Positions 1,780-46,262 of a stretch of DNA of 64,000 nucleotides are shown piece by piece (positions within the stretch are counted from its first letter, which is position 1; each line of letters begins with the position of its first letter). Source of the stretch: Hypanus sabinus (lineage: Eukaryota); assembly GCF_030144855.1 (NCBI RefSeq), contig NC_082719.1, positions 7,502,001-7,566,000 on the forward strand, given 5' to 3'. The notes under the pieces were generated by a model. It worked only from the letters and a program-made list of their open reading frames with translations, ran no database searches and was not told where the DNA came from. The position numbers were made by a program, and so were the translations under genes.

Positions 1780-2450
1780 CCAAAATAATGATGAGAGTTT
1801 GAATGCTTGCTTCTTCGCACTGAAGTGTACTGGCTGTCAAAAGGGTGCCGCTTAAAATGTTTCTTTGATCTTTTAGACTCTGTGATTGAATCTTTGCTCA
1901 AAGCCATCAAGAGCTTCAGAAACAAGATTGAACTTCTATGTGGAGATGTGGCACACCTAGGCGATCCACATGACAAAATGACCATTCTAGATATGAAACT
2001 GCAGGGTGAGAGTATCAATTTAATCCTGACAAAAAGTGCAGTGTCCACTTTTATAAGAAAATTGGAAATATATAAGCAAGCCATTGGGAGAAGAATGTTC
2101 TCACAGTTCCCCTGCATGAAAAGTATGGCACTCTCTTTCACAGATGGTGATTTGCAAGAGTACTGCTTACGCCTGTAGTCACTGAAGAAGGATTTTCAGA
2201 ATTGATTCAAGGATTTGAACAATCTGGAAATTCCGGACTGAGTAAATTGGAGAAAAGCCAAACTGCTCTTCATTGCATTTCCATCTTTCTACCTTGTTAA
2301 AAGAGGGTTCAGTGCAGTGAACCAGACACTCACCAAAAACAGAAACCATTTGGACTTTGTTACGCTAGGTGACTTGAAGCTTTTGCTGTCATAGCTTGAG
2401 CAGATATTTCAACTCTTGCTAAAAACCATCAAGCTCAAGGATCACATTGA
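1780..2450 (+). mobile_element. hAT-Charlie/Buster-type transposase fragment (also 12755-13425, 23728-24398 and about 33465-34053)
   Basis: LLLRTEVYWLSKG motif and degraded C-terminal dimerisation region (LLFIAFPSFYLVKRGFSAV...GDLKLLL...HQAQGSH), with in-frame stops. Confidence 0.8.
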
Positions 2451-2477
2451 TATCGAAGCTGCTGTACAGTTCTGTTG

Positions 2478-3422
2478 TACTTCCAGCATCTCCAACAGGA
2501 TCCCCCCAATACCAGGCATATCTTTCCCTTCCCTACCTCACCCCCTCCCTACTTTCTGCTTTCTAAAGTGGTTACTCATTATGCAACTCACTTGACAATC
2601 CATCCCTCCCCACTGATCTCCCTCCTTGCATTTACCCTTGCAAGTGGAACAAGTGCTACACATGCCCCTACACCTCCTTCCTCAACACCATTCAGGGCCC
2701 CAAACATTCCTTCCAGGTGAGGCGACACTTCACCTGTGAGTCGGCTGGTGTGGTATACTGCGTCCGGTGCTCCCGGTGTGGCCCTCTATATATTGCTGAG
2801 ACCCGATGCAGACTGGGATACCGTTTTGTTGAACACCTACGCTCTGTCCGCCAGAGAAAGCAGGATCTCCCAGTGGCCACACATTTTAATTCCACGTCCC
2901 ATTCCCATTCTGATATGTCTATCCATGGCCTCCTCTACTGTCAAGATGAAGCCACACTCCGGTTATAGAAACGAGACCTTATATTCCGTCTGTGTAGCCT
3001 CCAACCTGATGTCATGAACTTTGATTTCTCTAACTTCCATTAATGCCCCTCCTCCCCTTCTTACACCATCCCTAACTTTTCTCTCTCTCTTTCCCTCTCA
3101 CAATAACTCGTTGCCTGTTCTCCATCTTCCTCTGGTGTCTCCTCCCCCTTTCTTTCTTCAAAGGCCTTCCATCCTATGATACTCCCCTTCTCCGGCCTTG
3201 TATCCCTATTTCCAATCAACTTTCCAGCTCTTAGCTTCATCCCTCCCTCTCCTGTCTTCTCCTATCATTTTGGGTCTCCCTCCTACTCTCCCACTTTCAA
3301 ATCTCTTACTATTTCTTTTTTCTATTCGTCCTGACAAAGGGTCTCGACCCGAAACGTCAACTGTACTTCTTCCTATCGATGCTGCCTGGCCTGCTGCGTT
3401 CCACCACCATTTTGTGTGTGTT
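2478..3422 (+). mobile_element. Penelope-like element 3' part (GIY-YIG), chimeric across the array junction (also 13453-14397 and 24426-25370)
   Basis: FTCESAGVVYCVRCSRCGPLYIAETRCRLGYRFVEHLRSV...PVATHFN is a GIY-YIG endonuclease. It is followed by a pyrimidine-rich 3' region and a terminal motif with a degenerate hammerhead core at about 3327-3363. Confidence 0.88.
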
Positions 3423-3599
3423 TCCCAAAGGGAATGTTGCTTTTAAATAATCAAGAGCTTATATTCATGTCAAATTAATTTATTCTAATGTGACAAACTG
3501 CAATTACTTTGAGGTTTTTGATATTAACCGATCTCAGATGACCAGTGCTCAAAGTAATTGATTATGAAGTATTTCTACTGTAGAATGAGAAAACCACAG

Positions 3600-3880
3600 T
3601 ACAAAAAGTATTTACGTTTTTAGTGTCATTTGTTCAATACGTATGATAGTGTAAACACTTATTTTTAACCTTAACACCATTGCCGTTCATGTGCCTGCCC
3701 CCCTCCCCCCCCCCCCCCCAGTTAATACACACTTCCAATATTCAATATTTCAATATCTGGTAGTGAAAGGACACTAGACTGTGTTTCTTCCCCATAAAAC
3801 CTAATCATTGGCTGCACCAAGCTTCAGTACATCCTTCAGCATGTACTCCAGTAGCCTGGAATGTCCCAGTCAGCATCTCA
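3600..3880 (-). mobile_element. Tx1-like LINE 3' end (also at +10973 and +21947; related piece about 54360-54640)
   Basis: Minus strand reads LGHSRLLEYMLKDVLKLGAAN..VLWGRNTV*, a typical Tx1 ORF2 C-terminus, followed by a G-rich 3' UTR. Confidence 0.65.
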
Positions 3881-4127
3881 CTGTCCAGGCTTCCAACAGA
3901 GTGCACGTGTTGATGTTGAATGAAGTTCTTGTCCTTAGACGTTGAGAGTTCTTAACCATGCTGAACCAAGCAGCTGGGCCCAACCCCCCTCTCTCTCTCT
4001 CTCAGTGTTTTAATTTCTCTAGTCCGTCCAAGTTTCACATAACTTGTTACCCTTTACATCCCGTAGGTTTACTTAATGTATTGTTGTTTATCCCATTAAG
4101 TAGTGTTGGTGTCTGTCTCAATCATTA

Positions 4128-4324
4128 GAATCTCTGCAGATTCTGGAAATCCAGGCAGCACACACAAAATGCTGGAGGAACTCAGCAGACAGGCAACATC
4201 TATGGAAAAGAGTAAACAGTCAACATTTCAGGCAGAGAACTTGCAAATACTGGAAATGTCAACTGTTTACTCTTTATAGATGCTGCCTGGCCTGCTGAGT
4301 TCCTCCAGCAGTTTGTGTGTGCTG
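4128..4324. mobile_element. Palindromic non-autonomous element made of two inverted Penelope-like 3' termini (also 15101-15297 and 26075-26271)
   Basis: Arms cagcacacacaaaatgctggaggaactcagcag… and …ctgctgagttcctccagcagtttgtgtgtgctg match the PLE terminus at about 3360-3422. Confidence 0.75.
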
Positions 4325-4489
4325 GTGTCTATCTGCCTATTTCATGAGTAAATGTGTCATCTTTATCTTGGTACCATTCACCCATTGGCATCGGGTCAAT
4401 CCGTCTTTTACACTGTCTCTATGACTTTGTCCTGTTTCCATTGTATGGATTTTACCACAAAGATACTGGTCTATATTTTGTACTTATTT

Positions 4490-4733
4490 TTTGATATACA
4501 GTGTGGAGTCGATCCTTCTGGGTCTCTAGGGTGTGCTGCTTAGCATCCCCCAGATTTAATCCTAGCCTAATCAGGGGGCAATTTACAATGACCAACTTAC
4601 CTACCAACTGGTATGTCTTTGGACTATTAGATTAAACCAGAGAAATGGGAGGAAACCTGTGAGGTCACAGGGAGAACATACAAACTTCTTACAGGCTGTG
4701 GCTGCTGGTGCTAACTACTATGCTAGCATGCCA
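4490..4733 (-). mobile_element. V-SINE/HE1-like SINE, degraded (also at +10973 and +21947)
   Basis: Homologous to the SINE at 8462-8692 (gatttaa.cctagccta.tca..g.caatttacaatga). Confidence 0.7.
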
Positions 4734-5854
4734 TCCCGCAAAAGTATCCTATGAAGTTGAGACACACAAGGACCACTATCTTTGTCAACAGATCCAGGTC
4801 CTCCTCTGCATCTTGCACTTCAATATGCCCTGTGCATAAGAACATGCAAAAGTGGAGCAGAACCAGACAAGATTCTTACTAAACTTTTATTGCAATTATC
4901 TTCATGTCACTTGATTTCCTTATTGCTCAGGCATCAGAATTTGGGTTTAACAGATGATTGAGCTTCCACATTTATCCAGGGATTGAAAATTCTGAGGATT
5001 ACTCACCCCACAGCCTTGTGAAGAAATTTCTCCTCATCTAAATTATGTATAGTTTATCCTTTATTTGGGGATGTATCCACTTGTTATATTCTCCACAAAA
5101 GGGGAAACAGCCTCCCTCGCTCCATATCCTTTATTTGGGATGTTACCAATTCTTATACACTCAACAGGGAAAATAGCCTCCTTGGCTCCAGTCTTATAGG
5201 AATGCTGTGAGCTTTAATGGGATATTATTTTACTTTTCTTAATTCCAGAGAATACATGATGAGTTTACTCATTTTATCTACTTGCATTTACAGCATCCAC
5301 GTGACCTGATTGTGGATGATCATGGTGTCACTATAATTTCTGTGGACTTGCTTCCCATCCGCACCTTCAGCAACTCTGCTTCATATTTCCACACTGATGG
5401 CTATTTCTCTCTCTCCTTTTTGAAGTTTAAGTTCAAAGAGTTTTGCTTGAATCCTGTTTTGCTAACAGCACACATTATTGAAGCCATAGCACGTGATCTA
5501 AAATATCTGAAAATCTCATGTTTTAGCATACGTGCTTTCTGGTCACTGGTTGCAGTTGTTTAATTTGCAACTCTTAGAACTTTTGAAGACACTTTGTTAA
5601 AATATTTCAAAATTTTCACAACATTCTTGTAAGGAGACTCATATTACAAAGTTAATAAATTCACAGATGATCCGGATGTCCCTAGCTCATGTGATAGTAA
5701 TATTAAACCTCCTTTCTGCTTTCGGGTCCCCGATTATACTGTTCATGCTCAAGAATATCTCAACTTACTTGGCCACAGGGTAAATCATTGAGGCTTCTGA
5801 TACTTCTCAGGTTAATCACCATTGTCCACTGCCTATCATTAATGTTACTGTAAT

Positions 5855-5930
5855 CAGGAGTTGCAAACGTTTCTTATGCCACAGACTCCTACTATTAACT
5901 GAGGTGTCTGTGGCCCCCAGGTTGGGAACT
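5855..5930. mobile_element. Small hAT-like MITE remnant
   Basis: caggagttgcaaacg…ggttgggaac resembles imperfect CAGGGGTTCCCAACC-type TIRs; degraded. Confidence 0.4.
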
Positions 5931-6059
5931 GAAAATCCACCTCACAAACTTTGCGTTCTGTTTGTGTCCTGCTACTTCCCCAAGCAGCAACAACCTATAT
6001 TGGTCTTTACACTGAGGATCTGTACATTACATTACTGGTCAGTAGAGTGATTGACAAGA

Positions 6060-6090
6060 ACAGAGCTTCAGAATAAAAGACTTTATTGAG
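6060..6090 (-). terminator. Candidate distal polyadenylation site of the chemokine gene (also about 17033-17063 and 28007-28037)
   Basis: AATAAA on the minus strand at 6087-6082, followed by T/GT-rich sequence and preceded by AT-rich TGTA-containing sequence. An alternative ATTAAA lies at 7246-7241. Confidence 0.45.
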
Positions 6091-6831
6091 TGTAGACAAC
6101 TAAGAACAGTGCATGGTTTGTCAAAGCATCAACATTTATATCAACTGTTACACTGGTTTTGAAGATACACATACACTCACATTCTACATTCATAGTGGTA
6201 ACATAACCCAGGTATATGTGTAAGGACTTGTAATGATACATACAAAAGTTGAATGAAATATTGAAAAAAAAAGAGCAGTTACTGCAATTGTACATTAACA
6301 CAGTCTAATTAATAAATGCACCTTCAACTATTTAAACTATAAAATCTGGTTACAAAATAATTTGTCATATGGTTTCTAATAGTGTAACAATTTATCAGGT
6401 GCTACCTTCCATTCAGGACATGGAAGAATGGGCTAGAAATTTACGATTCAGGCGATTTTAATAATAAACCTGATCATTGATGATCAATTCATGTTTGTGA
6501 AAGATGATGTGGGTTTTGCATGCTAGTACAGGTTGAGCCTAAAAGAGGGACTGTGCATTTTCCCTTCTGGGTAGGCCCCAAGTTAAGTGTTTTTCCTTGT
6601 CTCCATTTCCCTCCAAAATGCTTCTGCTTTTGTTTTCAGAGAAGTTAGCTGCTCTTTATGTGTTCCTGAAGCTATACCCACTCACCTCATGTCCAACTGA
6701 TCATCATCACCTTTTCAAATCAGACTACCCCACACAGCAACAAAATACATCCCTTCTGGCTTCCTCCAGCAGTGACACAATGCTCTTTCTGTTGTATGGC
6801 TTCTGGTAGTTGGGGCTGAGGGGGAGGGATG

Positions 6832-7048
6832 TGTGGTGAACTACGTATACCTGTCTGGACACGCCCTCTGCTGACTGCTCCTGTGGCTCCTCCCACAGAC
6901 CCCTGGATAAAGGCGATCAAGGCCTGAGCCCGGCCTCTCAGTCTCCAGGATGTAGTATGGTGGTCACTCACTGTTTGTTCCTTCTTCCAGTCAATAAGAG
7001 CCAATATCTTGCCTTCACGTCTCAGAGTGAGTTATTGATGGTGCATCA
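6832..7048 (+). mobile_element. Solo LTR, 217 bp (also 17805-18021 and 28779-28995)
   Basis: TG…CA ends, 5-bp TSD GGATG (6827-6831 and 7049-7053), TATA-like GATAAA at 6906, polyA-like AATAAG/AATAAA at 6993. Confidence 0.82.
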
Positions 7049-7594
7049 GGATGGAGATATTTGAGGTGCCCCAACAGAAAGTAAACACATTTGCCCCTCC
7101 CATAAACGGAGACACTTTAACTCACTGTTTTTAAGAAGCCCGTCATGTTCTAGCCCAATGCATTGAATTCATGTTATCATTGTATCCAATTACATTATAA
7201 ACCTTAACATCTAGTAGTCAAACACTGGTTACTGTTCAAATTTAATAGCTTAAAACATGCATCTTCAAACATTCCATCGATTTAACTCTATTGAAGAAAT
7301 AATTGTTTGATATTTATCAACAATAAAAAATAAAATTCCATTGCATTTCTACACTTGTATCATTGTAAATTATTGACAAACATATATTGGTATATTAATA
7401 TTTATGGCTCAGGTGCTACATAGAGGAGATAAAGACAATGAACAAATGACAAAGATTTGTGAGGATTTCATACATTTCTATGTATGTAGTCAATAGACAA
7501 ACAGAACATTTCAGCTATGGACAGGACTATTACGATGTGCTTTAATGACAATTGTTTGGCTCATTACTCTGCTTTTTGCAAGGGACACTTTGTT

Positions 7595-10500
7595 TCATTC
7601 GGCCAATGGACTTGCTGCAGTGGTTGGCAGAGACGCTTCATTGCTTTTCTTTCTAGGAAATACCAGAACGAAAGATAAAGTGAGTTTGAAACATTAGTTT
7701 GGTTCTAATTGAAATTTACCAGATACCTATTGATTCCTGCTGGGAGATCAGACTTTAAAGAATTCACTTGGGTGGACATAGAAGATTCAATACTTTATCA
7801 GTATTATCACAATGGCTTATTCTTCAGACGACCGAAATAAAAATAAATTATTTGATCATTTTCAGAAGGCAACTTGCCAAGTGCAAGTAGGCTGCTGTGT
7901 TTTCCATGTAACATCCTTGATAACACAAAGCCTGCAAAGTCTTTTGAAATATTTTCATTGAGAGGAAAAAGACCAAGTACTCTGAACTGGCAACCGAAGC
8001 TGCTCAGAATGGCTGGAAGACCAAGATTTTCCCTGTAGAAGTGGGATGTAGGGGATTCGTAGCTACATCTATTGAAGAAGGTGGGGGTGAGGGGTGTCTC
8101 CCTCCAACAAGCAGTCAAGTCCTTGTCAAACGCAGCAGAGGAAAGCAGCAATTGGATTTGGATTAAAAGGAAAGAGAACAACTGGGCTGCAAGATGAAGA
8201 CAGGAGGGTACGGAAATGAGGGGGGTGTATCTGGGACGCCTGGTAGTACCGTTGAGCCCTCTGGAGTCGTCGTGGGCTTATCAATGAAATGTCAAAGAAG
8301 GAGGGTGCCCACCAGATGACCCCGACGACGTAGCTACCCTCCTCGTCACCACTCCAAGCCACTGCCAACATCGAGAGGGCCGACTTTATCATTGGGATTG
8401 AAACATCAAGTCCTAGTAGCTCTACTGATCTTCTAATATTTCAATATTTTGAAATATTTATTTATTGAAATACAGTGCAGAATAGGCCCTCCTGGCTGGT
8501 CGAGTCACAGCACCCAGCCATCTCCCGATTTAACCCTAGCCTAGTCACAGGACAATTTACAATGATCAATGAACCTACCAATGGTCTGTGGGAGGAAACC
8601 CATGCAGACACGGGGAGATTGTACAAACTCCTTACAGGCAGTGGCGGGAATTGAACCCGGATCACCTGTACTGTAAATTGTTGTTCTAATGTCCTGAAAG
8701 ACATTCTATAATTCTATGTATTTTTCTCACATTAATAATGTGCTTAATTGAACTTAAGTAGTGCATTATGCACGTGTAGATAACTGGTCTTGCATGCAAA
8801 TAAAATTCAGATGATACAAGACAAAGTGAATAACTTTGCTAAAACGAACAGGGTTTACCTTTCAGTCAAGATATTAATAACTTTTTTGACCCATTCGGTT
8901 TCAGGATTCACACAGACCTTTGCACCTGTCTTCAGGGTAATTCTGTGATGCACAATGAGAAAATGTTTTGGTTAAAATAAAGAAGATATGGCACTGTTTC
9001 CTGTAAATGAGTTTTCTTTCATAATTTATATGAACAGTGGTTTAAAATATACATTGAACAAAAGACAGCCAATAAATGAATACATTCAATGGCAATTTCA
9101 GAAAGAAGGGCCATTATGCAAACAGATGTAAAATTCTGATAAATTACAGACATACCTTAGACAGCTGAAAGATTTGTTGTTTTAAAATACTGAATGAAAA
9201 TAGATCATGTTAAGGACAAACTTAGATATTAGAATATATTCTGATATGTTTATATCAACATTTCCGCACACTTACTGAGTAAGGAGTCGACATAAATGTG
9301 TGATTTCAATCGTATCAGTGTGAGAAGCTTACTTAAGATAATGTAAAATGTATTAATCCACCTGCTAATTCTGCAAAAATCAAACAAACTATAGTTTTTC
9401 AGACTTGTGCACTTAAATTCTTAGATTCACTATAGGAGGCTGAAATTTGTACTTACACAATCTCCACCTTTCTGCAGTGGGGACCCTGAGGAAAGATCTC
9501 GATATGTTGAAACTTTTTGGGATGAATGAGATGAGATGTAGTTTTCACACATCTGCATCTTGTGATTTTTTGACTGGTTGCACACAATCCTTTTATGAAA
9601 GGAAAAGAAAAAGAAGGGTCTACAATTGTGCCAAGGAAATTAAAAGTAGCTGAAAAAAATTGCTGACATGTTGCAAACTGCTTCCTTGAATAATACAACA
9701 TAGAAAATTCAGTTTTAGATGCAGTTTTCCTAATTCCCATACTGTTCCAAAATCTTATGCAGTTACTAAATGTATATAATGGCCTACTTATTATTAATAT
9801 GCACAATCCTTCCCCGATTTACCTGCAAATAAAAGGGAAAAATACATGCCTTCCTGCTGCATTCTGTAAAGGTAAGAATCATAACTTTGAGTATCTGCCG
9901 TTGACATAAACCTTGTCTACTAACGGAAAAGATTTGCAAACCAGGTCTCAGTACTTCATTGAATTGGTTGCTATCCTGTTTTGGGCACAAGCTCGATACA
10001 GAGTGGACTCTGAATAAGAGAAAGTCTTTGAATAATTTGGAACTGTAGATGAAAATATATGGTAACAACATGATAAATTATCAGTGGTGATTGCTTCTCA
10101 CTTCAGTCTAGATTACCAGCTTGATTGGATCCAATCTTATCTACAATGACTCATCTCAAGGCTTTATAATTGGCCACTGAAACTCCCCGAGAAGGTCAGC
10201 TATTTTAATTCTTTATAATCAGAGTAGTGCCAACATAGATTAATTTTATTGGATGTTTAAGGTATAATGGATTTTATTTCATATATGAGACAGAAAATGA
10301 GAAGTTGATACAAACTATTTGTCTCATATATGAGACAGTAATCTTCTGTACTCACTTACCTTTTAAATGAGAAGTTGATGCAAACTATTTCTATGAAAGT
10401 ATTCAAACAGTATATGGCACAATCATATACTTCTCAAATATTTACAATGATCATTCACACTTACTTTGCAGTAGTAACATAAACATGTATCTTGCTCCAG

Positions 10501-10635
10501 AAACAATTAAGTCCATCGTGAATCATAATTGCCAATCTTCCAGTTTTAATTTAAACTGCATGGCTAGTACTTACCATGAGCAGCTAGGCAAACTACAGCT
10601 ACCGCCACCAACAAAAACGTGGTCTGAGTCTTCAT
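7595..10635 (-). CDS. cxcl8-like: CXC chemokine, CXCL8/IL-8-like, ELR-negative, copy A (4 exons, 111 aa)
   Basis: Hand-spliced exons 10635-10575, 9589-9457, 8942-8859 and 7652-7595 (61+133+84+58 = 336 nt). All introns are GT-AG, phases 1/2/2 as in vertebrate CXC chemokine genes. Protein: MKTQTTFLLVAVAVVCLAAHGLCATSQKITRCRCVKTTSHLIHPKKFQHIEIFPQGPHCRKVEIVITLKTGAKVCVNPETEWVKKVINILTERKKSNEASLPTTAASPLAE. It has a signal peptide, CRC, HPK, GPHC and CVNP..WV motifs. Orthology to CXCL8 proper is not established. Confidence 0.93.
7958..8425 (+). mobile_element. 5'-truncated HERO/R2-group non-LTR retrotransposon (restriction-like endonuclease C-terminus and 3' UTR) in chemokine intron 3 (also 18931-19398 and 29905-30372)
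   Basis: ERKKTKYSELATEAAQNGWKTKIFPVEVGCRGFVATS, then a frameshift, then LLKKVGVRGVSLQQAVKSLSNAAEESSNWIWIKRKENNWAAR* (stop at 8195-8197). These match the K..KY and PVEVGCRG REL motifs. Confidence 0.8.
8462..8692 (-). mobile_element. tRNA-derived V-SINE/HE1-like SINE in chemokine intron 3 (also at +10973 and +21947)
   Basis: B-box GGTTCAATTCC, then the core ...ctccccgtgtctgcatgggtttcctcc, and an A-rich tail. Confidence 0.8.
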
Positions 10636-10699
10636 CGTCAGCAAGTCTGTATGACTTTTGTTCTTCAGTCAGCAGCTGGCAACCTTCAGAGTGTCTTGG

Positions 10700-10760
10700 T
10701 TTGGCATATCAGACTTGTATTTATCTGCAAGTACAAAGGAAGTTATGACATCAGAGAAAA
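10700..10760 (-). promoter_or_regulatory. Proximal promoter of chemokine copy A (same sequence upstream of copies B and C)
   Basis: TATA-like GATAAATA (10725-10718) about 85 nt upstream of the ATG. ETS core AAAGGAAGT at 10735-10743. CRE/AP-1-like TGACATCA at 10746-10753. Confidence 0.55.
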
Positions 10761-13700
10761 AAACATGACATAAACATAATTGTTCAAGCACTTTTGTCTT
10801 GAATCATTTCTTCCAAAACAATAAAAGGATGAAGGATGAACTTTCTCCATTTATTTACACCTGATTTTAGAAATAGTTACTGTAGTTATAGATAATCTCT
10901 AAACAATTATTTCTTGGTTTCCAGTATCTCTGTGCATAAAGCAATATGCTGGTGCAACTTTCCTCATTCTGGCCACTGAGTGTTAGCTTGTCTCTCTGGC
11001 CACTTCAACAATATAAATTCAAATTCAACACTTCTTCTTATGAGATCAGTGCTCTGGCACAAAAACACTAACTATTTTTCTTACCACAACTATTGCTTAA
11101 CCTGCTGAAGGTTTCCAGCACTTTGTTTTTTTTAAAAAACAAATTTCTAGAACCTGCAGTTTTCATTTGCTTTCTGACAGAGGTGCAATGTACAATTGAC
11201 TCATTACTGTCTTTGATCTTTTGAATGAATGGCTAGCAATTTCCAGCAATTCCTATTACTACTTACATAACCATATAACAATTACAGCACGGAAACAGGC
11301 TATCTTGGCCCTTCTAGTCCGTGCTGAACGCTTACTCTCACATAGTCCCACTGACCCACACTCAGCCCATAACTCTCCATTCCTTTTCTATCCATATACC
11401 TATCCAATTTTTTAAAAATGACAATACCAAACCTGCCTCTACCACTTCTACCGGAAGCTCGTTCCACGCAGTTACCATTCTCTGAGTAAAGAAATTTCCC
11501 CTCGTGTTACCGTTAAACTTTTGCCCCCTAACTCTCAACTCATGTCCTCTTGTTTGAATCTCCCCTACTCTTAATGGAAAAAAGTCAACTCTATCTATCC
11601 CCCTCATAATTTTAAATACCTCTATCAAGTCCCCCCTCAACCTTCTAAGCTCCAAAGAGTAAAGACCTAACTTGTTCAATCTTTTCTTGTAACTTAGGTG
11701 CTGAAACTCAGGTAAGACTCTAGTAAATCTTCTCTGTACTCTCTCTATTTTGTTGACATCTTTCCTATAATTCGGTGACCAGAACTGTACACAATACTAC
11801 AAATTCAGCCTTACCAATGCCTTGACAAATTTAGATTTCTGTGGAAATCTAAATCTTTGTGATGGGCAGCGATTTTAACAGCGTCTTTAGTTCACTTGCA
11901 CTGTAACTATTAAGTTGCTAGGTTGTGCAATACCCAACAATCCTGTAGATGGAGTAAGATCGCAATACATCTGGTCAAAACCAGATAGTCTGATCCTTGA
12001 CAGTTTCCGAGTTTGTTGCCCAAGTACTTACAGTCATATCCACCTAACTCATGTGTCTGACCATTGCCTCCTACTGGCTGACTATTAACTCCAGGAAGAT
12101 CAGAAAGATGGAATAGAGGTTTGGAAGCTGAATGTGAAACTGGTGATACAGAAAACATTAAGGAACGATGAAGGATTATGCAGCTTAACAAACCATGAAA
12201 CCCTCCAACCATACCTCCAATTAATTTGATTACGTAAAAGTCCAAAGTATATTTATTATCAAAGTATGTGTACTTCATATAACCTTGAGATTCATCTCCT
12301 TACAGGCAGCTACAAAACAAAGAAACCCAATAGAACCCATTAAAACAGAAGAAAACTGTCAAACACACAATGTGCAGAGAGAAATAAAAGCAAATTGTGC
12401 AAACAATAAAAGTAAGCAAATAGCATTCAGAACTAAAGTTCATCAAACCAGGCATCATTGCATCTGAATCAAAGTGCATTACTTACAGATCACAGCCTCA
12501 GTTCAGCCCAGAGATGAGTAAACCTCTGGCCCCGACACCCTGACCATTTCAATCTGGCCCAGAAGTGAAATCGTCCAAACCTTTTGTCGTTCTTTGCCGT
12601 TGGTCTGGGGCCCTGCCACATCCATACAGTCTCATGCCCGAGCCCCACTCCCTCAATTCAGCTCATACCTGACCTTTCGAATCTGGCTCAAAATATAAAT
12701 TGATCAAACCTCAGGTCTTGAGGAACATAGATTTCTTGTGCAACAGCTGGAGCACCAAAATAATGATGAGAGTTTGAATGCTTGCTTCTTCGCACTGAAG
12801 TGTACTGGCTGTCAAAAGGGTGCCGCTTAAAATGTTTCTTTGATCTTTTAGACTCTGTGATTGAATCTTTGCTCAAAGCCATCAAGAGCTTCAGAAACAA
12901 GATTGAACTTCTATGTGGAGATGTGGCACACCTAGGCGATCCACATGACAAAATGACCATTCTAGATATGAAACTGCAGGGTGAGAGTATCAATTTAATC
13001 CTGACAAAAAGTGCAGTGTCCACTTTTATAAGAAAATTGGAAATATATAAGCAAGCCATTGGGAGAAGAATGTTCTCACAGTTCCCCTGCATGAAAAGTA
13101 TGGCACTCTCTTTCACAGATGGTGATTTGCAAGAGTACTGCTTACGCCTGTAGTCACTGAAGAAGGATTTTCAGAATTGATTCAAGGATTTGAACAATCT
13201 GGAAATTCCGGACTGAGTAAATTGGAGAAAAGCCAAACTGCTCTTCATTGCATTTCCATCTTTCTACCTTGTTAAAAGAGGGTTCAGTGCAGTGAACCAG
13301 ACACTCACCAAAAACAGAAACCATTTGGACTTTGTTACGCTAGGTGACTTGAAGCTTTTGCTGTCATAGCTTGAGCAGATATTTCAACTCTTGCTAAAAA
13401 CCATCAAGCTCAAGGATCACATTGATATCGAAGCTGCTGTACAGTTCTGTTGTACTTCCAGCATCTCCAACAGGATCCCCCCAATACCAGGCATATCTTT
13501 CCCTTCCCTACCTCACCCCCTCCCTACTTTCTGCTTTCTAAAGTGGTTACTCATTATGCAACTCACTTGACAATCCATCCCTCCCCACTGATCTCCCTCC
13601 TTGCATTTACCCTTGCAAGTGGAACAAGTGCTACACATGCCCCTACACCTCCTTCCTCAACACCATTCAGGGCCCCAAACATTCCTTCCAGGTGAGGCGA

Positions 13701-16700
13701 CACTTCACCTGTGAGTCGGCTGGTGTGGTATACTGCGTCCGGTGCTCCCGGTGTGGCCCTCTATATATTGCTGAGACCCGATGCAGACTGGGATACCGTT
13801 TTGTTGAACACCTACGCTCTGTCCGCCAGAGAAAGCAGGATCTCCCAGTGGCCACACATTTTAATTCCACGTCCCATTCCCATTCTGATATGTCTATCCA
13901 TGGCCTCCTCTACTGTCAAGATGAAGCCACACTCCGGTTATAGAAACGAGACCTTATATTCCGTCTGTGTAGCCTCCAACCTGATGTCATGAACTTTGAT
14001 TTCTCTAACTTCCATTAATGCCCCTCCTCCCCTTCTTACACCATCCCTAACTTTTCTCTCTCTCTTTCCCTCTCACAATAACTCGTTGCCTGTTCTCCAT
14101 CTTCCTCTGGTGTCTCCTCCCCCTTTCTTTCTTCAAAGGCCTTCCATCCTATGATACTCCCCTTCTCCGGCCTTGTATCCCTATTTCCAATCAACTTTCC
14201 AGCTCTTAGCTTCATCCCTCCCTCTCCTGTCTTCTCCTATCATTTTGGGTCTCCCTCCTACTCTCCCACTTTCAAATCTCTTACTATTTCTTTTTTCTAT
14301 TCGTCCTGACAAAGGGTCTCGACCCGAAACGTCAACTGTACTTCTTCCTATCGATGCTGCCTGGCCTGCTGCGTTCCACCACCATTTTGTGTGTGTTTCC
14401 CAAAGGGAATGTTGCTTTTAAATAATCAAGAGCTTATATTCATGTCAAATTAATTTATTCTAATGTGACAAACTGCAATTACTTTGAGGTTTTTGATATT
14501 AACCGATCTCAGATGACCAGTGCTCAAAGTAATTGATTATGAAGTATTTCTACTGTAGAATGAGAAAACCACAGTACAAAAAGTATTTACGTTTTTAGTG
14601 TCATTTGTTCAATACGTATGATAGTGTAAACACTTATTTTTAACCTTAACACCATTGCCATTCATGTGCCTGCCCCCCTCCCCCCCCCCCCCAGTTAATA
14701 CACACTTCCAATATTCAATATTTCAATATCTGGTAGTGAAAGGACACTAGACTGTGTTTCTTCCCCATAAAACCTAATCATTGGCTGCACCAAGCTTCAG
14801 TACATCCTTCAGCATGTACTCCAGTAGCCTGGAATGTCCCAGTCAGCATCTCACTGTCCAGGCTTCCAACAGAGTGCACGTGTTGATGTTGAATGAAGTT
14901 CTTGTCCTTAGACGTTGAGAGTTCTTAACCATGCTGAACCAAGCAGCTGGGCCCAACCCCCCTCTCTCTCTCTCTCAGTGTTTTAATTTCTCTAGTCCGT
15001 CCAAGTTTCACATAACTTGTTACCCTTTACATCCCGTAGGTTTACTTAATGTATTGTTGTTTATCCCATTAAGTAGTGTTGGTGTCTGTCTCAATCATTA
15101 GAATCTCTGCAGATTCTGGAAATCCAGGCAGCACACACAAAATGCTGGAGGAACTCAGCAGACAGGCAACATCTATGGAAAAGAGTAAACAGTCAACATT
15201 TCAGGCAGAGAACTTGCAAATACTGGAAATGTCAACTGTTTACTCTTTATAGATGCTGCCTGGCCTGCTGAGTTCCTCCAGCAGTTTGTGTGTGCTGGTG
15301 TCTATCTGCCTATTTCATGAGTAAATGTGTCATCTTTATCTTGGTACCATTCACCCATTGGCATCGGGTCAATCCGTCTTTTACACTGTCTCTATGACTT
15401 TGTCCTGTTTCCATTGTATGGATTTTACCACAAAGATACTGGTCTATATTTTGTACTTATTTTTTGATATACAGTGTGGAGTCGATCCTTCTGGGTCTCT
15501 AGGGTGTGCTGCTTAGCATCCCCCAGATTTAATCCTAGCCTAATCAGGGGGCAATTTACAATGACCAACTTACCTACCAACTGGTATGTCTTTGGACTAT
15601 TAGATTAAACCAGAGAAATGGGAGGAAACCTGTGAGGTCACAGGGAGAACATACAAACTTCTTACAGGCTGTGGCTGCTGGTGCTAACTACTATGCTAGC
15701 ATGCCATCCCGCAAAAGTATCCTATGAAGTTGAGACACACAAGGACCACTATCTTTGTCAACAGATCCAGGTCCTCCTCTGCATCTTGCACTTCAATATG
15801 CCCTGTGCATAAGAACATGCAAAAGTGGAGCAGAACCAGACAAGATTCTTACTAAACTTTTATTGCAATTATCTTCATGTCACTTGATTTCCTTATTGCT
15901 CAGGCATCAGAATTTGGGTTTAACAGATGATTGAGCTTCCACATTTATCCAGGGATTGAAAATTCTGAGGATTACTCACCCCACAGCCTTGTGAAGAAAT
16001 TTCTCCTCATCTAAATTATGTATAGTTTATCCTTTATTTGGGGATGTATCCACTTGTTATATTCTCCACAAAAGGGGAAACAGCCTCCCTCGCTCCATAT
16101 CCTTTATTTGGGATGTTACCAATTCTTATACACTCAACAGGGAAAATAGCCTCCTTGGCTCCAGTCTTATAGGAATGCTGTGAGCTTTAATGGGATATTA
16201 TTTTACTTTTCTTAATTCCAGAGAATACATGATGAGTTTACTCATTTTATCTACTTGCATTTACAGCATCCACGTGACCTGATTGTGGATGATCATGGTG
16301 TCACTATAATTTCTGTGGACTTGCTTCCCATCCGCACCTTCAGCAACTCTGCTTCATATTTCCACACTGATGGCTATTTCTCTCTCTCCTTTTTGAAGTT
16401 TAAGTTCAAAGAGTTTTGCTTGAATCCTGTTTTGCTAACAGCACACATTATTGAAGCCATAGCACGTGATCTAAAATATCTGAAAATCTCATGTTTTAGC
16501 ATACGTGCTTTCTGGTCACTGGTTGCAGTTGTTTAATTTGCAACTCTTAGAACTTTTGAAGACACTTTGTTAAAATATTTCAAAATTTTCACAACATTCT
16601 TGTAAGGAGACTCATATTACAAAGTTAATAAATTCACAGATGATCCGGATGTCCCTAGCTCATGTGATAGTAATATTAAACCTCCTTTCTGCTTTCGGGT

Positions 16701-18567
16701 CCCCGATTATACTGTTCATGCTCAAGAATATCTCAACTTACTTGGCCACAGGGTAAATCATTGAGGCTTCTGATACTTCTCAGGTTAATCACCATTGTCC
16801 ACTGCCTATCATTAATGTTACTGTAATCAGGAGTTGCAAACGTTTCTTATGCCACAGACTCCTACTATTAACTGAGGTGTCTGTGGCCCCCAGGTTGGGA
16901 ACTGAAAATCCACCTCACAAACTTTGCGTTCTGTTTGTGTCCTGCTACTTCCCCAAGCAGCAACAACCTATATTGGTCTTTACACTGAGGATCTGTACAT
17001 TACATTACTGGTCAGTAGAGTGATTGACAAGAACAGAGCTTCAGAATAAAAGACTTTATTGAGTGTAGACAACTAAGAACAGTGCATGGTTTGTCAAAGC
17101 ATCAACATTTATATCAACTGTTACACTGGTTTTGAAGATACACATACACTCACATTCTACATTCATAGTGGTAACATAACCCAGGTATATGTGTAAGGAC
17201 TTGTAATGATACATACAAAAGTTGAATGAAATATTGAAAAAAAAAGAGCAGTTACTGCAATTGTACATTAACACAGTCTAATTAATAAATGCACCTTCAA
17301 CTATTTAAACTATAAAATCTGGTTACAAAATAATTTGTCATATGGTTTCTAATAGTGTAACAATTTATCAGGTGCTACCTTCCATTCAGGACATGGAAGA
17401 ATGGGCTAGAAATTTACGATTCAGGCGATTTTAATAATAAACCTGATCATTGATGATCAATTCATGTTTGTGAAAGATGATGTGGGTTTTGCATGCTAGT
17501 ACAGGTTGAGCCTAAAAGAGGGACTGTGCATTTTCCCTTCTGGGTAGGCCCCAAGTTAAGTGTTTTTCCTTGTCTCCATTTCCCTCCAAAATGCTTCTGC
17601 TTTTGTTTTCAGAGAAGTTAGCTGCTCTTTATGTGTTCCTGAAGCTATACCCACTCACCTCATGTCCAACTGATCATCATCACCTTTTCAAATCAGACTA
17701 CCCCACACAGCAACAAAATACATCCCTTCTGGCTTCCTCCAGCAGTGACACAATGCTCTTTCTGTTGTATGGCTTCTGGTAGTTGGGGCTGAGGGGGAGG
17801 GATGTGTGGTGAACTACGTATACCTGTCTGGACACGCCCTCTGCTGACTGCTCCTGTGGCTCCTCCCACAGACCCCTGGATAAAGGCGATCAAGGCCTGA
17901 GCCCGGCCTCTCAGTCTCCAGGATGTAGTATGGTGGTCACTCACTGTTTGTTCCTTCTTCCAGTCAATAAAAGCCAATATCTTGCCTTCACGTCTCAGAG
18001 TGAGTTATTGATGGTGCATCAGGATGGAGATATTTGAGGTGCCCCAACAGAAAGTAAACACATTTGCCCCTCCCATAAACGGAGACACTTTAACTCACTG
18101 TTTTTAAGAAGCCCGTCATGTTCTAGCCCAATGCATTGAATTCATGTTATCATTGTATCCAATTACATTATAAACCTTAACATCTAGTAGTCAAACACTG
18201 GTTACTGTTCAAATTTAATAGCTTAAAACATGCATCTTCAAACATTCCATCGATTTAACTCTATTGAAGAAATAATTGTTTGATATTTATCAACAATAAA
18301 AAATAAAATTCCATTGCATTTCTACACTTGTATCATTGTAAATTATTGACAAACATATATTGGTATATTAATATTTATGGCTCAGGTGCTACATAGAGGA
18401 GATAAAGACAATGAACAAATGACAAAGATTTGTGAGGATTTCATACATTTCTATGTATGTAGTCAATAGACAAACAGAACATTTCAGCTATGGACAGGAC
18501 TATTACGATGTGCTTTAATGACAATTGTTTGGCTCATTACTCTGCTTTTTGCAAGGGACACTTTGTT

Positions 18568-21500
18568 TCATTCGGCCAATGGACTTGCTGCAGTGGTTGG
18601 CAGAGACGCTTCATTGCTTTTCTTTCTAGGAAATACCAGAACGAAAGATAAAGTGAGTTTGAAACATTAGTTTGGTTCTAATTGAAATTTACCAGATACC
18701 TATTGATTCCTGCTGGGAGATCAGACTTTAAAGAATTCACTTGGGTGGACATAGAAGATTCAATACTTTATCAGTATTATCACAATGGCTTATTCTTCAG
18801 ACGACCGAAATAAAAATAAATTATTTGATCATTTTCAGAAGGCAACTTGCCAAGTGCAAGTAGGCTGCTGTGTTTTCCATGTAACATCCTTGATAACACA
18901 AAGCCTGCAAAGTCTTTTGAAATATTTTCATTGAGAGGAAAAAGACCAAGTACTCTGAACTGGCAACCAAAGCTGCTCAGAATGGCTGGAAGACCAAGAT
19001 TTTCCCTGTAGAAGTGGGATGTAGGGGATTCGTAGCTACATCTATTGAAGAAGGTGGGGGTGAGGGGTGTCTCCCTCCAACAAGCAGTCAAGTCCTTGTC
19101 AAACGCAGCAGAGGAAAGCAGCAATTGGATTTGGATTAAAAGGAAAGAGAACAACTGGGCTGCAAGATGAAGACAGGAGGGTACGGAAATGAGGGGGGTG
19201 TATCTGGGACGCCTGGTAGTACCGTTGAGCCCTCTGGAGTCGTCGTGGGCTTATCAATGAAATGTCAAAGAAGGAGGGTGCCCACCAGATGACCCCGACG
19301 ACGTAGCTACCCTCCTCGTCACCACTCCAAGCCACTGCCAACATCGAGAGGGCCGACTTTATCATTGGGATTGAAACATCAAGTCCTAGTAGCTCTACTG
19401 ATCTTCTAATATTTCAATATTTTGAAATATTTATTTATTGAAATACAGTGCAGAATAGGCCCTCCTGGCTGGTCGAGTCACAGCACCCAGCCATCTCCCG
19501 ATTTAACCCTAGCCTAGTCACAGGACAATTTACAATGATCAATGAACCTACCAATGGTCTGTGGGAGGAAACCCATGCAGACACGGGGAGATTGTACAAA
19601 CTCCTTACAGGCAGTGGCGGGAATTGAACCCGGATCACCTGTACTGTAAATTGTTGTTCTAATGTCCTGAAAGACATTCTATAATTCTATGTATTTTTCT
19701 CACATTAATAATGTGCTTAATTGAACTTAAGTAGTGCATTATGCACGTGTAGATAACTGGTCTTGCATGCAAATAAAATTCAGATGATACAAGACAAAGT
19801 GAATAATTTTGCTAAAACGAACAGGATTTACCTTTCAGTCAAGATATTAATAACTTTTTTGACCCATTCGGTTTCAGGATTCACACAGACCTTTGCACCT
19901 GTCTTCAGGGTAATTCTGTGATGCACAATGAGAAAATGTTTTGGTTAAAATAAAGAAGATATGGCACTGTTTCCTGTAAATGAGTTTTCTTTCATAATTT
20001 ATATGAACAGTGGTTTAAAATATACATTGAACAAAAGACAGCCAATAAATGAATACATTCAATGGCAATTTCAGAAAGAAGGGCCATTATGCAAACAGAT
20101 GTAAAATTCTGATAAATTACAGACATACCTTAGACAGCTGAAAGATTTGTTGTTTTAAAATACTGAATGAAAATAGATCATGTTAAGGACAAACTTAGAT
20201 ATTAGAATATATTCTGATATGTTTATATCAACATTTCCGCACACTTACTGAGTAAGGAGTCGACATAAATGTGTGATTTCAATCGTATCAGTGTGAGAAG
20301 CTTACTTAAGATAATGTAAAATGTATTAATCCACCTGCTAATTCTGCAAAAATCAAACAAACTATAGTTTTTCAGACTTGTGCACTTAAATTCTTAGATT
20401 CACTATAGGAGGCTGAAATTTGTACTTACACAATCTCCACCTTTCTGCAGTGGGGACCCTGAGGAAAGATCTCGATATGTTGAAACTTTTTGGGATGAAT
20501 GAGATGAGATGTAGTTTTCACACATCTGCATCTTGTGATTTTTTGACCGGTTGCACACAATCCTTTTACGAAAGGAAAAGAAAAAGAAGGGTCTACAATT
20601 GTGCCAAGGAAATTAAAAGTAGCTGAAAAAAATTGCTGACATGTTGCAAACTGCTTCCTTGAATAATACAACATAGAAAATTCAGTTTTAGATGCAGTTT
20701 TCCTAATTCCCATACTGTTCCAAAATCTTATGCAGTTACTAAATGTATATAATGGCCTACTTATTATTAATATGCACAATCCTTCCCCGATTTACCTGCA
20801 AATAAAAGGGAAAAATACATGCCTTCCTGCTGCATTCTGTAAAGGTAAGAATCATAACTTTGAGTATCTGCCGTTGACATAAACCTTGTCTACTAACGGA
20901 AAAGATTTGCAAACCAGGTCTCAGTACTTCATTGAATTGGTTGCTATCCTGTTTTGGGCACAAGCTCGATACAGAGTGGACTCTGAATAAGAGAAAGTCT
21001 TTGAATAATTTGGAACTGTAGATGAAAATATATGGTAACAACATGATAAATTATCAGTGGTGATTGCTTCTCACTTCAGTCTAGATTACCAGCTTGATTG
21101 GATCCAATCTTATCTACAATGACACATCTCAAGGCTTTATAATTGGCCACTGAAACTCCCCGAAAAGGTCAGCTATTTTAATTCTTTATAATCAGAGTAG
21201 TGCCAACATAGATTAATTTTATTGGATGTTTAAGGTATAATGGATTTTATTTCATATATGAGACAGAAAATGAGAAGTTGATACAAACTATTTGTCTCAT
21301 ATATGAGACAGTAATCTTCTGTACTCACTTACCTTTTAAATGAGAAGTTGATGCAAACTATTTCTATGAAAGTATTCAAACAGTATATGGCACAATCATA
21401 TACTTCTCAAATATTTACAATGATCATTCACACTTACTTTGCAGTAGTAACATAAACATGTATCTTGCTCCAGAAACAATTAAGTCCATCGTGAATCATA

Positions 21501-21608
21501 ATTGCCAATCTTCCAGTTTTAATTTAAACTGCATGGCTAGTACTTACCATGAGCAGCTAGGCAAACTACAGCTACCGCCACCAACAAAAACGTGGTCTGA
21601 GTCTTCAT
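18568..21608 (-). CDS. cxcl8-like: CXC chemokine, CXCL8/IL-8-like, copy B (S26G variant)
   Basis: Exons 21608-21548, 20562-20430, 19915-19832 and 18625-18568 with the same splice sites as copy A. The change at 20548 turns AGT into GGT (S26G), also visible in the ORF track as GLCATGQKITRCRC. Confidence 0.93.
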
Positions 21609-24600
21609 CGTCAGCAAGTCTGTATGACTTTTGTTCTTCAGTCAGCAGCTGGCAACCTTCAGAGTGTCTTGGTTTGGCATATCAGACTTGTATTTATCTG
21701 CAAGTACAAAGGAAGTTATGACATCAGAGAAAAAAACATGACATAAACATAATTGTTCAAGCACTTTTGTCTTGAATCATTTCTTCCAAAACAATAAAAG
21801 GATGAAGGATGAACTTTCTCCATTTATTTACACCTGATTTTAGAAATAGTTACTGTAGTTATAGATAATCTCTAAACAATTATTTCTTGGTTTCCAGTAT
21901 CTCTGTGCATAAAGCAATATGCTGGTGCAACTTTCCTCATTCTGGCCACTGAGTGTTAGCTTGTCTCTCTGGCCACTTCAACAATATAAATTCAAATTCA
22001 ACACTTCTTCTTATGAGATCAGTGCTCTGGCACAAAAACACTAACTATTTTTCTTACCACAACTATTGCTTAACCTGCTGAAGGTTTCCAGCACTTTGTT
22101 TTTTTTAAAAAACAAATTTCTAGAACCTGCAGTTTTCATTTGCTTTCTGACAGAGGTGCAATGTACAATTGACTCATTACTGTCTTTGATCTTTTGAATG
22201 AATGGCTAGCAATTTCCAGCAATTCCTATTACTACTTACATAACCATATAACAATTACAGCACGGAAACAGGCTATCTTGGCCCTTCTAGTCCGTGCTGA
22301 ACGCTTACTCTCACATAGTCCCACTGACCCACACTCAGCCCATAACTCTCCATTCCTTTTCTATCCATATACCTATCCAATTTTTTAAAAATGACAATAC
22401 CAAACCTGCCTCTACCACTTCTACCGGAAGCTCGTTCCACGCAGTTACCATTCTCTGAGTAAAGAAATTTCCCCTCGTGTTACCGTTAAACTTTTGCCCC
22501 CTAACTCTCAACTCATGTCCTCTTGTTTGAATCTCCCCTACTCTTAATGGAAAAAAGTCAACTCTATCTATCCCCCTCATAATTTTAAATACCTCTATCA
22601 AGTCCCCCCTCAACCTTCTAAGCTCCAAAGAGTAAAGACCTAACTTGTTCAATCTTTTCTTGTAACTTAGGTGCTGAAACTCAGGTAAGACTCTAGTAAA
22701 TCTTCTCTGTACTCTCTCTATTTTGTTGACATCTTTCCTATAATTCGGTGACCAGAACTGTACACAATACTACAAATTCAGCCTTACCAATGCCTTGACA
22801 AATTTAGATTTCTGTGGAAATCTAAATCTTTGTGATGGGCAGCGATTTTAACAGCGTCTTTAGTTCACTTGCACTGTAACTATTAAGTTGCTAGGTTGTG
22901 CAATACCCAACAATCCTGTAGATGGAGTAAGATCGCAATACATCTGGTCAAAACCAGATAGTCTGATCCTTGACAGTTTCCGAGTTTGTTGCCCAAGTAC
23001 TTACAGTCATATCCACCTAACTCATGTGTCTGACCATTGCCTCCTACTGGCTGACTATTAACTCCAGGAAGATCAGAAAGATGGAATAGAGGTTTGGAAG
23101 CTGAATGTGAAACTGGTGATACAGAAAACATTAAGGAACGATGAAGGATTATGCAGCTTAACAAACCATGAAACCCTCCAACCATACCTCCAATTAATTT
23201 GATTACGTAAAAGTCCAAAGTATATTTATTATCAAAGTATGTGTACTTCATATAACCTTGAGATTCATCTCCTTACAGGCAGCTACAAAACAAAGAAACC
23301 CAATAGAACCCATTAAAACAGAAGAAAACTGTCAAACACACAATGTGCAGAGAGAAATAAAAGCAAATTGTGCAAACAATAAAAGTAAGCAAATAGCATT
23401 CAGAACTAAAGTTCATCAAACCAGGCATCATTGCATCTGAATCAAAGTGCATTACTTACAGATCACAGCCTCAGTTCAGCCCAGAGATGAGTAAACCTCT
23501 GGCCCCGACACCCTGACCATTTCAATCTGGCCCAGAAGTGAAATCGTCCAAACCTTTTGTCGTTCTTTGCCGTTGGTCTGGGGCCCTGCCACATCCATAC
23601 AGTCTCATGCCCGAGCCCCACTCCCTCAATTCAGCTCATACCTGACCTTTCGAATCTGGCTCAAAATATAAATTGATCAAACCTCAGGTCTTGAGGAACA
23701 TAGATTTCTTGTGCAACAGCTGGAGCACCAAAATAATGATGAGAGTTTGAATGCTTGCTTCTTCGCACTGAAGTGTACTGGCTGTCAAAAGGGTGCCGCT
23801 TAAAATGTTTCTTTGATCTTTTAGACTCTGTGATTGAATCTTTGCTCAAAGCCATCAAGAGCTTCAGAAACAAGATTGAACTTCTATGTGGAGATGTGGC
23901 ACACCTAGGCGATCCACATGACAAAATGACCATTCTAGATATGAAACTGCAGGGTGAGAGTATCAATTTAATCCTGACAAAAAGTGCAGTGTCCACTTTT
24001 ATAAGAAAATTGGAAATATATAAGCAAGCCATTGGGAGAAGAATGTTCTCACAGTTCCCCTGCATGAAAAGTATGGCACTCTCTTTCACAGATGGTGATT
24101 TGCAAGAGTACTGCTTACGCCTGTAGTCACTGAAGAAGGATTTTCAGAATTGATTCAAGGATTTGAACAATCTGGAAATTCCGGACTGAGTAAATTGGAG
24201 AAAAGCCAAACTGCTCTTCATTGCATTTCCATCTTTCTACCTTGTTAAAAGAGGGTTCAGTGCAGTGAACCAGACACTCACCAAAAACAGAAACCATTTG
24301 GACTTTGTTACGCTAGGTGACTTGAAGCTTTTGCTGTCATAGCTTGAGCAGATATTTCAACTCTTGCTAAAAACCATCAAGCTCAAGGATCACATTGATA
24401 TCGAAGCTGCTGTACAGTTCTGTTGTACTTCCAGCATCTCCAACAGGATCCCCCCAATACCAGGCATATCTTTCCCTTCCCTACCTCACCCCCTCCCTAC
24501 TTTCTGCTTTCTAAAGTGGTTACTCATTATGCAACTCACTTGACAATCCATCCCTCCCCACTGATCTCCCTCCTTGCATTTACCCTTGCAAGTGGAACAA

Positions 24601-35003: not shown

Positions 35004-35116
35004 CATTTACATTCCTACTCTCTCATCAGAATCAGGTTTATCATCACATTTACATTCCTACTCTCTCATCAGAATCAGGTTTATCATCACATTTACATTC
35101 CTACTCTCTCATCAGA
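35004..35116. repeat. 43-bp tandem repeat (about 2.6 copies) at a Rex1 3' junction
   Basis: Unit catttacattcctactctctcatcagaatcaggtttatcatca starts at 35004, 35047 and 35090. Confidence 0.85.
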
Positions 35117-46040: not shown

Positions 46041-46262
46041 ACACACACAAAATGCTGGTGGAACACAGCAGGCCAGTCAGCATCTATAGGAAGAAGTACA
46101 GTCGACGTTTCAGGCCGAGACCCTTTGTTAGTCCTGATGAAGGGTCTTGGCCCGAAATGTCGATTGTACTTCTTCCTATAGATGCTGCCTGGCCTGCTGC
46201 ATTCCACCAGCATTTTGTGTGTGTTGCTTGAATTTCCAGCATCTGCAGATTTCCTCGTGTTT
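46041..46262. mobile_element. Palindromic Penelope-terminus element containing hammerhead ribozyme motifs
   Basis: About 90-bp inverted arms at 46041-46130 and 46135-46224, with CTGATGA…GAAA cores at the centre. Confidence 0.8.
46130..46166 (+). ncRNA. Minimal type-I hammerhead ribozyme motif (Penelope-associated)
   Basis: AGTC-CTGATGA-A-GGG(TCTTGG)CCC-GAAA-T-GTC-GATT. Conserved core, stem I AGUC/GAUU, stem II GGG/CCC and a loopless stem III that would need dimerisation. Confidence 0.6.

Follow-up and report, generated by a model that had tools for sequence, protein, structure and literature searches.

Two Penelope-like element copies meet at the right edge of a tandem array of IL-8-like chemokine genes in the Atlantic stingray, Hypanus sabinus

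Tandem duplication and deletion by unequal exchange between repeats are textbook events for Alu and L1 elements. In many vertebrates chemokine gene families grow through tandem duplication, although how the first copy arose can seldom be traced. When Alu recombination mediates a deletion, one chimeric repeat is left behind, with recombination windows of 20 bp on average and conserved hotspots (PMC2041999). Canonical EN+ Penelope-like elements (PLEs) are laid out as a reverse transcriptase (RT) followed by a C-terminal GIY-YIG endonuclease; a CX2-5CxxC linker marks the Neptune-type PLEs, and two cysteines of a CCHH zinc finger lie between GIY and YIG (PMC8557442). Among the papers listed that mention both PLEs and non-allelic homologous recombination, none deals with such an event as far as titles and the opening lines of abstracts tell, and one of them presents PLEs only as active 5′-truncated insertions.

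The DNA analysed here, a 64-kb stretch of the Hypanus sabinus genome (the window), holds the right end of a tandem array of interleukin-8 (IL-8)-like chemokine genes; the left end of the array lies outside the window. As in Alu-Alu and L1-L1 non-allelic homologous recombination, repeats in direct orientation stand at the unit edge, and the hybrid is colinear and in register. Unlike those duplications, the repeat is a PLE whose two copies today share only about 70% identity, the terminal repeat is no unaltered parent, and the left parent would lie outside the window. The locus likewise resembles an Alu-mediated deletion in having a single chimeric repeat whose parts differ in age and flanks, whereas the chimeric candidate described here stands at the end of a tandem gene array and is known in its post-recombination state alone (compare PMC2041999). 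With respect to concerted evolution of tandem gene arrays, internal units that are 99.8% identical and a less homogenised end unit are the usual pattern, from which this array shows no unusual departure.

A young array of IL-8-like chemokine genes

Self-comparison of the window demonstrated an array with a period of 10,975 bp, positions 1-21009 being 99.79% identical to positions 10976-31980. Three units follow one another head to tail (2743-13717, 13718-24690 and 24691-34328), and the end of one further unit occupies positions 1-2742 to their left. No unit-like sequence was found by self-comparison to the right of position 34945 within the window. The IL-8-like gene found in every unit is intact, has four exons and reads on the minus strand; the array of these genes is young.

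The gene copies were located by tblastn with P0003 and P0004. Gene copy 1 extends from 7598 to 10635 (exons 10573-10635, 9456-9590, 8858-8941 and 7598-7654), gene copy 2 from 18571 to 21608, corresponding to XP_059844480, and gene copy 3 from 29545 to 32156, corresponding to XP_059844481, all on the minus strand. The gene product matched the Pfam IL8 family (E = 4e-16), and exon 2 of the array gene was 100% identical to that of the interleukin-8-like protein XP_059844481. Exon 1 of gene copy 3 carries the variant Y16, as in the annotated XP_059844481.

The protein cluster contained only three H. sabinus proteins, two of which are window copies 2 and 3, and the third is XP_059844479. Gene copy 1 is intact and encodes Cys16 together with Ser26, a combination absent from all three of these proteins, and the gene neighbourhood tables have no called gene at its position; for both reasons copy 1 seems to be absent from the public annotation. 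The third protein, XP_059844479, is 93 amino acids long, is identical to the first 93 residues of XP_059844480 and ends where exon 3 does; no gene is called within 10 kb of it. Its residue combination is that of none of the window copies, and its gene is therefore located outside the window. XP_059844479 may represent the leftmost copy of the array, lacking exon 4, to the left of the window.

In its final 2.3 kb (31999-34328) the array consists of an older form of the upstream region of the unit, interrupted by gaps, with identities to the units of 96.3%, 97.6% and 87.7% in successive tracts. The tract at 33461-33714, for example, is 87.7% identical to 12964-13220, and its neighbouring tracts reach 97.6% and 98.9%. 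Since the tract identities differ, the terminal unit is a patchwork of differently aged tracts; in terms of concerted evolution, identity within this mosaic terminal tract ranges over 87.7-98.9%. The array closes with an island: a stretch of 474 bp on the plus strand (33855-34328) is 98.9% identical to the internal units. Its left border is a 140-bp segment specific to the terminal unit (33715-33854), with the 87.7% tract beyond, and on the right it stops exactly at the switch between PLE copies described below. The island looks like a recent patch of conversion or unequal exchange in a concertedly evolving array.

Three segments of the units are missing from the terminal tract: 10037-10477 (441 bp), 11263-11836 (574 bp) and 12517-12963 (447 bp). 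These unit-only segments and the 140-bp terminal segment are indels dated between an old duplication and a recent amplification. Pfam gave no match for the open frames at 12782-13153 (plus strand) and 11362-11679 (minus strand, inside the 574-bp segment), which by appearance had been taken for transposon remnants. The first duplication is old because Hemitrygon akajei has a tandem pair of chemokine genes spaced 11,619 bp apart and the contigs of related organisms contain at least two diverged copies of the sequence at 3423-4151.

Additional repeats were observed in and beside the array. Two very abundant repeats lie within the unit, with contig depths summed in four related organisms of 1.2-4.6 million at 4124-4325 and about 0.04-0.45 million at 4528-4700. 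In the relatives' contigs, many joints connect position 3422, where the PLE ends, with about 4155-4162, and the sequence near 4155 may accordingly be a further fragment resembling a PLE tail. Directly after the terminal PLE tail, a perfect 43-bp tandem repeat of 2.6 copies (35004-35116) is followed by ATCAGA repeats; the 43-bp repeat looks like another interspersed element adjoining the right flank of the array. The right flank also has two direct copies of a repeat of about 930 bp that are 94% identical (41306-42236 and 45117-46039), and an inverted pair of about 760 bp, 84% identical (55355-56116 and 58335-59085). The last 98 bp of the PLE tail at the unit junctions match another PLE tail at 46128-46225, and a fold-back of about 184 bp (46041-46224) is 88% self-complementary, with an arm 89% identical to the PLE tail at 3325-3422.

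An in-register switch between two PLE copies

A four-way alignment was made of the repeats at the unit junctions and at the array end. The junction element, a 5′-truncated PLE on the plus strand, occupies 2478-3422, with identical copies at 13453-14397 and 24426-25370. The terminal element, on the same strand, consists of two parts. Its 5′ part (34064-34328) is the same copy by descent as 2478-2742, with 4 mismatches in 265 bp, and its 3′ part (34329-34945) is a different, older PLE copy, colinear with 2743-3422 at 70% identity.

The identification of the repeat as a PLE in the initial annotation was confirmed. The open stretch at 2567-2965 (133 codons) gave 3,565 protein matches at E ≤ 0.001, and the long matches (816-927 amino acids) align through their last 120 or so residues. 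When seven of the long matches were scanned, RVT_1 was found in the middle of six and GIY-YIG at the C-terminus of six. The alignment demonstrated a C-KWNK-C-YT-C linker upstream, followed by VVY-C-VR-C-SRC-GPL-YIA-ET, with R, EH and HFN conserved downstream, and the columns of the linker and GIY-YIG motifs are nearly invariant across 12 aligned sequences. For the PLE copies of the window itself, the Pfam GIY-YIG score was below the cut-off, with E = 0.019 at 49760-50290, and the junction copy gave no match. Homology to an independent PLE copy of the window (49766-50335, plus strand) starts at 2479, indicating that the junction element is 5′-truncated at about 2478. Judged by their sequence, the junction and terminal repeats are dead, 5′-truncated PLE fragments that span the zinc-finger linker and the GIY-YIG part and run on into the 3′ tail. 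They share with canonical EN+ PLEs, Neptune-like by the linker, the C-terminal alignment, the 5′ truncation and membership of a very abundant family; unlike a canonical EN+ PLE, the junction fragment has no RT, carries one stop and has YIA in place of YIG.

Rfam hammerhead models gave no match at the gathering threshold across the window, and over 2400-3500 none even when E values up to 1 were allowed. The Rfam models may fail to detect minimal PLE hammerheads. A hammerhead ribozyme motif was reported in the terminal repeat of PLEs (PMC4209133), and the motif is not universal among PLEs (PMC8557442).

Junction and terminal elements match up to 2742 and 34328, respectively, and then part abruptly, as the initial annotation had proposed. 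The comparison of 2247-2742 with the terminal element yielded 469 matches, 5 mismatches and one gap of 22 bp (98.9% identity), whereas that of 2743-3422 yielded 425 matches, 182 mismatches and 83 gap columns (70.0% identity; Fisher p = 1.9e-44). In windows of 50 bases, identity falls at the switch from 0.96-1.00 to 0.46-0.82, and the last 80 bp before it do not differ between the junction and terminal elements. The 22-mer that ends at the switch is present exactly at 2721-2742, 13696-13717, 24669-24690 and 34307-34328, and shuffled sequences gave 0 matches. The gap of 22 bp corresponds to 2450-2471, just upstream of the PLE 5′ end, a segment that all junction copies have and the terminal copy lacks; its absence there is probably a deletion.

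The proposal that the sequence switches colinearly to another copy of the same family was also upheld. The switch lies after the codons ending in HFTCES and immediately before the GIY motif, at the 3′ end of the most conserved block of the PLE family. The DNA continues across it without a gap, and the alignment is likewise gap-free against full-length PLE proteins (12 sequences aligned), so that the two halves are colinear on the PLE family and do not form a nested insertion. Past the switch, colinearity runs on until the PLE stops, at 3422 in the junction element and about 34945 in the terminal one, and the right flanks that follow are unrelated. Because a base-exact register is kept between copies that are only about 70% identical, the exchange was guided by homology: at the right boundary of the array, two distinct PLE copies lying in direct orientation were joined by it. 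Chance and nested insertion, considered as other origins of the join, were ruled out by the in-register join on DNA and on the 12 aligned PLE proteins. A search for target-site duplications found no common word of at least 7 bp between the flanks of either element or in the cross-pairings.

Read contigs of the best-matching related organisms, which are about 4% diverged and share a fraction of 0.24-0.39 of the words, break at the repeat. Among the contig pieces of the relatives that were listed, none bridges 2742. Runs of three related organisms each have about 200 contigs of the family whose match stops at 2742, with divergent sequence following, and the loose end at 2742 in these contigs is a family-wide signal. 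The joint from the PLE to the unit at 3422 was found in contigs of four related organisms.

Segments of different age in the two elements

The age of each segment was assessed against P0008 and P0009, two PLE copies that lie elsewhere in this genome, on different chromosomes, and against the independent copy at 49766-50335, which served as the outside reference and has a CpG observed/expected ratio (o/e) of 0.52 and 0.60 in its halves. Both elements have in common an old-looking distal 5′ segment (2478-2600) and a proximal 5′ block (2601-2742) that reaches from the CX4CxxC linker to HFTCES, is 98.6% identical to 34187-34328 and has the switch at its 3′ end. Beyond the switch, the GIY-YIG coding part of the junction 3′ half (2743-3040) is young, with a CpG o/e of 0.62, one stop and no frameshift; the non-coding tail (3041-3422) is colinear with 34591-34945 and ends at the PLE 3′ end. 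All of these segments read on the plus strand.

The terminal 3′ part has decayed, with deletions of 9, 10 and 11 bp, two stops and a CpG o/e of 0.23. Private changes in the 3′ region numbered 52 in the terminal and 16 in the junction element (p = 1e-5), and the junction 3′ half, with its single stop and no frameshift, is thus the better preserved, as had been claimed. Amino-acid identity to P0009 was 80-82% for the shared 5′ part, 80% for the junction 3′ part and 48% for the terminal 3′ part; the corresponding values for P0008 were 76-80%, 68% and 52%. The 5′ and 3′ parts of the terminal element therefore differ in identity (Fisher p = 0.0005 for P0009 and 0.009 for P0008), and the two halves of the junction element show no difference in protein identity. 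Over codons 13-58 (2603-2740), the amino-acid distance was 0.13-0.15 to P0009 and 0.20-0.22 to P0008. Among 2,415 pairs of family proteins, the distances of the junction element to P0009 and P0008 were typical, and those of the terminal element lay above the 95th percentile. In branch length, the shared block and the junction 3′ half were equal at 0.22, and the terminal 3′ half reached 0.61.

DNA distances to the independent copy separated the distal from the proximal part of the shared half: 0.34 for 2478-2600, 0.23 for 2601-2742, 0.23 for the junction 3′ half and 0.37 for the terminal 3′ half. The contrasts were significant at p = 0.007 (proximal versus terminal 3′) and p = 0.03 (distal versus junction 3′), and reached p = 0.06 for distal versus proximal; being drawn from short segments and one DNA reference, they are of moderate significance. 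CpG content differed between the halves of the junction element, with an o/e of 0.08 (one CpG) in the shared 5′ half and 0.56 in the junction 3′ half, compared to 0.23 in the terminal 3′ half. At the level of the junction 3′ half, 6.9 CpGs would be expected in the shared 5′ half (P = 0.008), while at the level of the terminal 3′ half the chance of at most one CpG is P = 0.23. The claim that the junction element is a hybrid was supported by this contrast between its 5′ and 3′ halves. The terminal element had also been considered as the sole chimera on the basis of protein identity and branch lengths, a view undone by the CpG-depleted shared 5′ half.

The distal segment (2478-2600) has a CpG o/e of 0, and TG/CA-type changes have removed every one of the five CpG sites present in the independent copy; the segment also has one stop, one frameshift and indels compared to the independent copy and P0009. 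The motif SAFRRD.SLRDSL.H, kept in P0008, P0009 and the independent copy, was destroyed there by CpG loss. The distal segment is a CpG-rich variable linker, and faster decay alone may account for its appearance. In the proximal block, the single CpG leans weakly to an old age (P = 0.055), whereas the substitutions indicate a young one.

The contigs of related organisms agree with a segment boundary near 2600. The proximal block (2601-2742) has a family depth of about 1 million at ≥90% likeness in the relatives, contigs at single-copy depth cover 2455-2562 and 2455-2620, and family depth jumps about 70-fold from the bin 2508-2608 to the bin 2609-2709. In two related organisms, contigs start at 2455, inside the 22-bp segment.

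Neither of the two single-switch models fits these data, which therefore point to a three-part mosaic: a putatively old 2478-2600, a young-looking 2601-2742, and then a segment that appears young in the junction element or old in the terminal element. Because the block before it resembles the young junction 3′ half, the visible switch at 2742/34328 is probably not the simple founding crossover. The initial annotation required the terminal element to be an intact parent of one age, which did not hold: the 142 bp before the switch are junction-like and the 3′ half is much older.

Origin of the array

We give a probability of about one in two to the reading that, in a dasyatid stingray, the ancestral IL-8-like gene was a single copy with a PLE on either side, the two differing in age, and that an unequal exchange between them founded the array, later blurred by conversion; the left boundary lies outside the window. 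According to this reading, an old PLE to the right of the gene and a younger PLE to its left would have recombined unequally to give the first duplication, with the true crossover at about 2600-2742. The 3′ half of the younger copy together with its right flank would then have become the start of every unit, and the old copy would have stayed at the right edge. The copies would have diverged by a few per cent, followed by recent amplification and homogenisation that included the terminal island, when the unit version would have replaced the final 474 bp of the terminal unit, stopping where the conserved block ends and similarity drops away. The switch would be sharp at 2742/34328 because copying stopped at that block end, and the 142 bp before it would be young in the terminal element too because of the conversion. 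We infer the founding exchange, the position of the true crossover and the conversion step; the PLE identity, the array, the sharp colinear switch, the differing ages of the segments and the homogenised island are shown by the data.

The heterogeneity of the junction element favours this origin by PLE exchange, its CpG o/e of 0.08 versus 0.56 standing beside 0.5-0.6 in both halves of the independent copy. So does the likeness of the old parts, the distal 5′ segment and the terminal 3′ half, in distance (0.34 and 0.37) and CpG o/e (0 and 0.23). Conversion is independently visible as the 98.9% island ending at the switch, and exchanges in conserved blocks of diverged repeats, within short windows of identity, are known for Alu (PMC2041999). 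On the other side, the younger left-hand parental PLE would sit outside the window, and two events, a crossover and a conversion, are needed. The age contrasts come from short segments and one DNA reference (p = 0.03 and 0.06), the signals of the proximal block are mixed, its substitutions being young and its single CpG not (P = 0.055), and the distal linker may simply decay faster. The copies are now about 70% identical, which is poor for classical homologous recombination, and there are no target-site duplications for either pairing. XP_059844479 hints at a leftmost gene copy without exon 4, which would not be so in a full leftmost unit.

A secondary trimming of the array is the main alternative, less likely than the founding reading, in which the PLE of the last unit joined an unrelated older PLE further right and a deletion removed the original right end of the array. 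The terminal element would then be the recombinant, and the junction elements would be ordinary parts of the unit, silent on how the array arose. As a trimming predicts, the sequence leading up to the switch has the age of the junction element and the terminal 3′ half is much older, and both the placement of the two elements among the 2,415 family pairs and the branch lengths of 0.22, 0.22 and 0.61 fit it; Alu-type deletions leave exactly one chimeric repeat (PMC2041999), and the 93-residue XP_059844479 hints at a left boundary away from a PLE. However, the junction element is itself inhomogeneous, its distal 5′ segment being old-looking and CpG-free, so that it is not a plain single insertion. 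Trimming also leaves the origin of the array unexplained, adds a separate deletion, and has to derive the distal 5′ segment and the terminal 3′ half from two old PLE pieces that are unrelated to each other. A single crossover exactly at 2742, between an intact right PLE (34064-34945) and a left PLE with no later change, would explain most simply why the junction repeat is a hybrid with the terminal repeat as its 5′ half, and the CpG depletion of that half agrees with the level of the terminal 3′ half (P = 0.23) but departs from that of the junction 3′ half (P = 0.008). It is nevertheless improbable: 2601-2742 should then be as decayed as the terminal 3′ half, whereas its distance is 0.23 compared to 0.37 (p = 0.007), amino-acid identity to P0009 falls from 80% in the shared 5′ part to 48% in the terminal 3′ part (p = 0.0005), and the proximal block is within 10% of a very abundant family in the relatives. 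Least credible of all is that no such genomic exchange took place. Units of 11 kb at 99.8% identity are hard to assemble, and the 80 bp before the switch are identical in both elements, as a false assembly join in the PLE block would have it, yet the terminal tract has its own substitutions and indels and the exon 1 variant Y16 of the annotated XP_059844481. An ectopic conversion from a distant PLE, the other form of this explanation, would have left the flank unchanged, yet the right flanks of the two elements differ.

The initial annotation had proposed that a crossover between two PLEs seeded the array. A homology-guided PLE exchange at the right edge stands and may have founded the array, so that the proposal is supported in part. 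The principle of repeat-mediated exchange is already established, and the array edge adds an example rather than a new concept. What the edge keeps is a readable recombination joint inside an abundant retrotransposon family of cartilaginous fish. Should the array go back to this exchange, an immune gene duplication mediated by PLEs would be on record, and PLEs, which are very abundant in ray genomes, would be recombination substrates as Alu and L1 are in primates.
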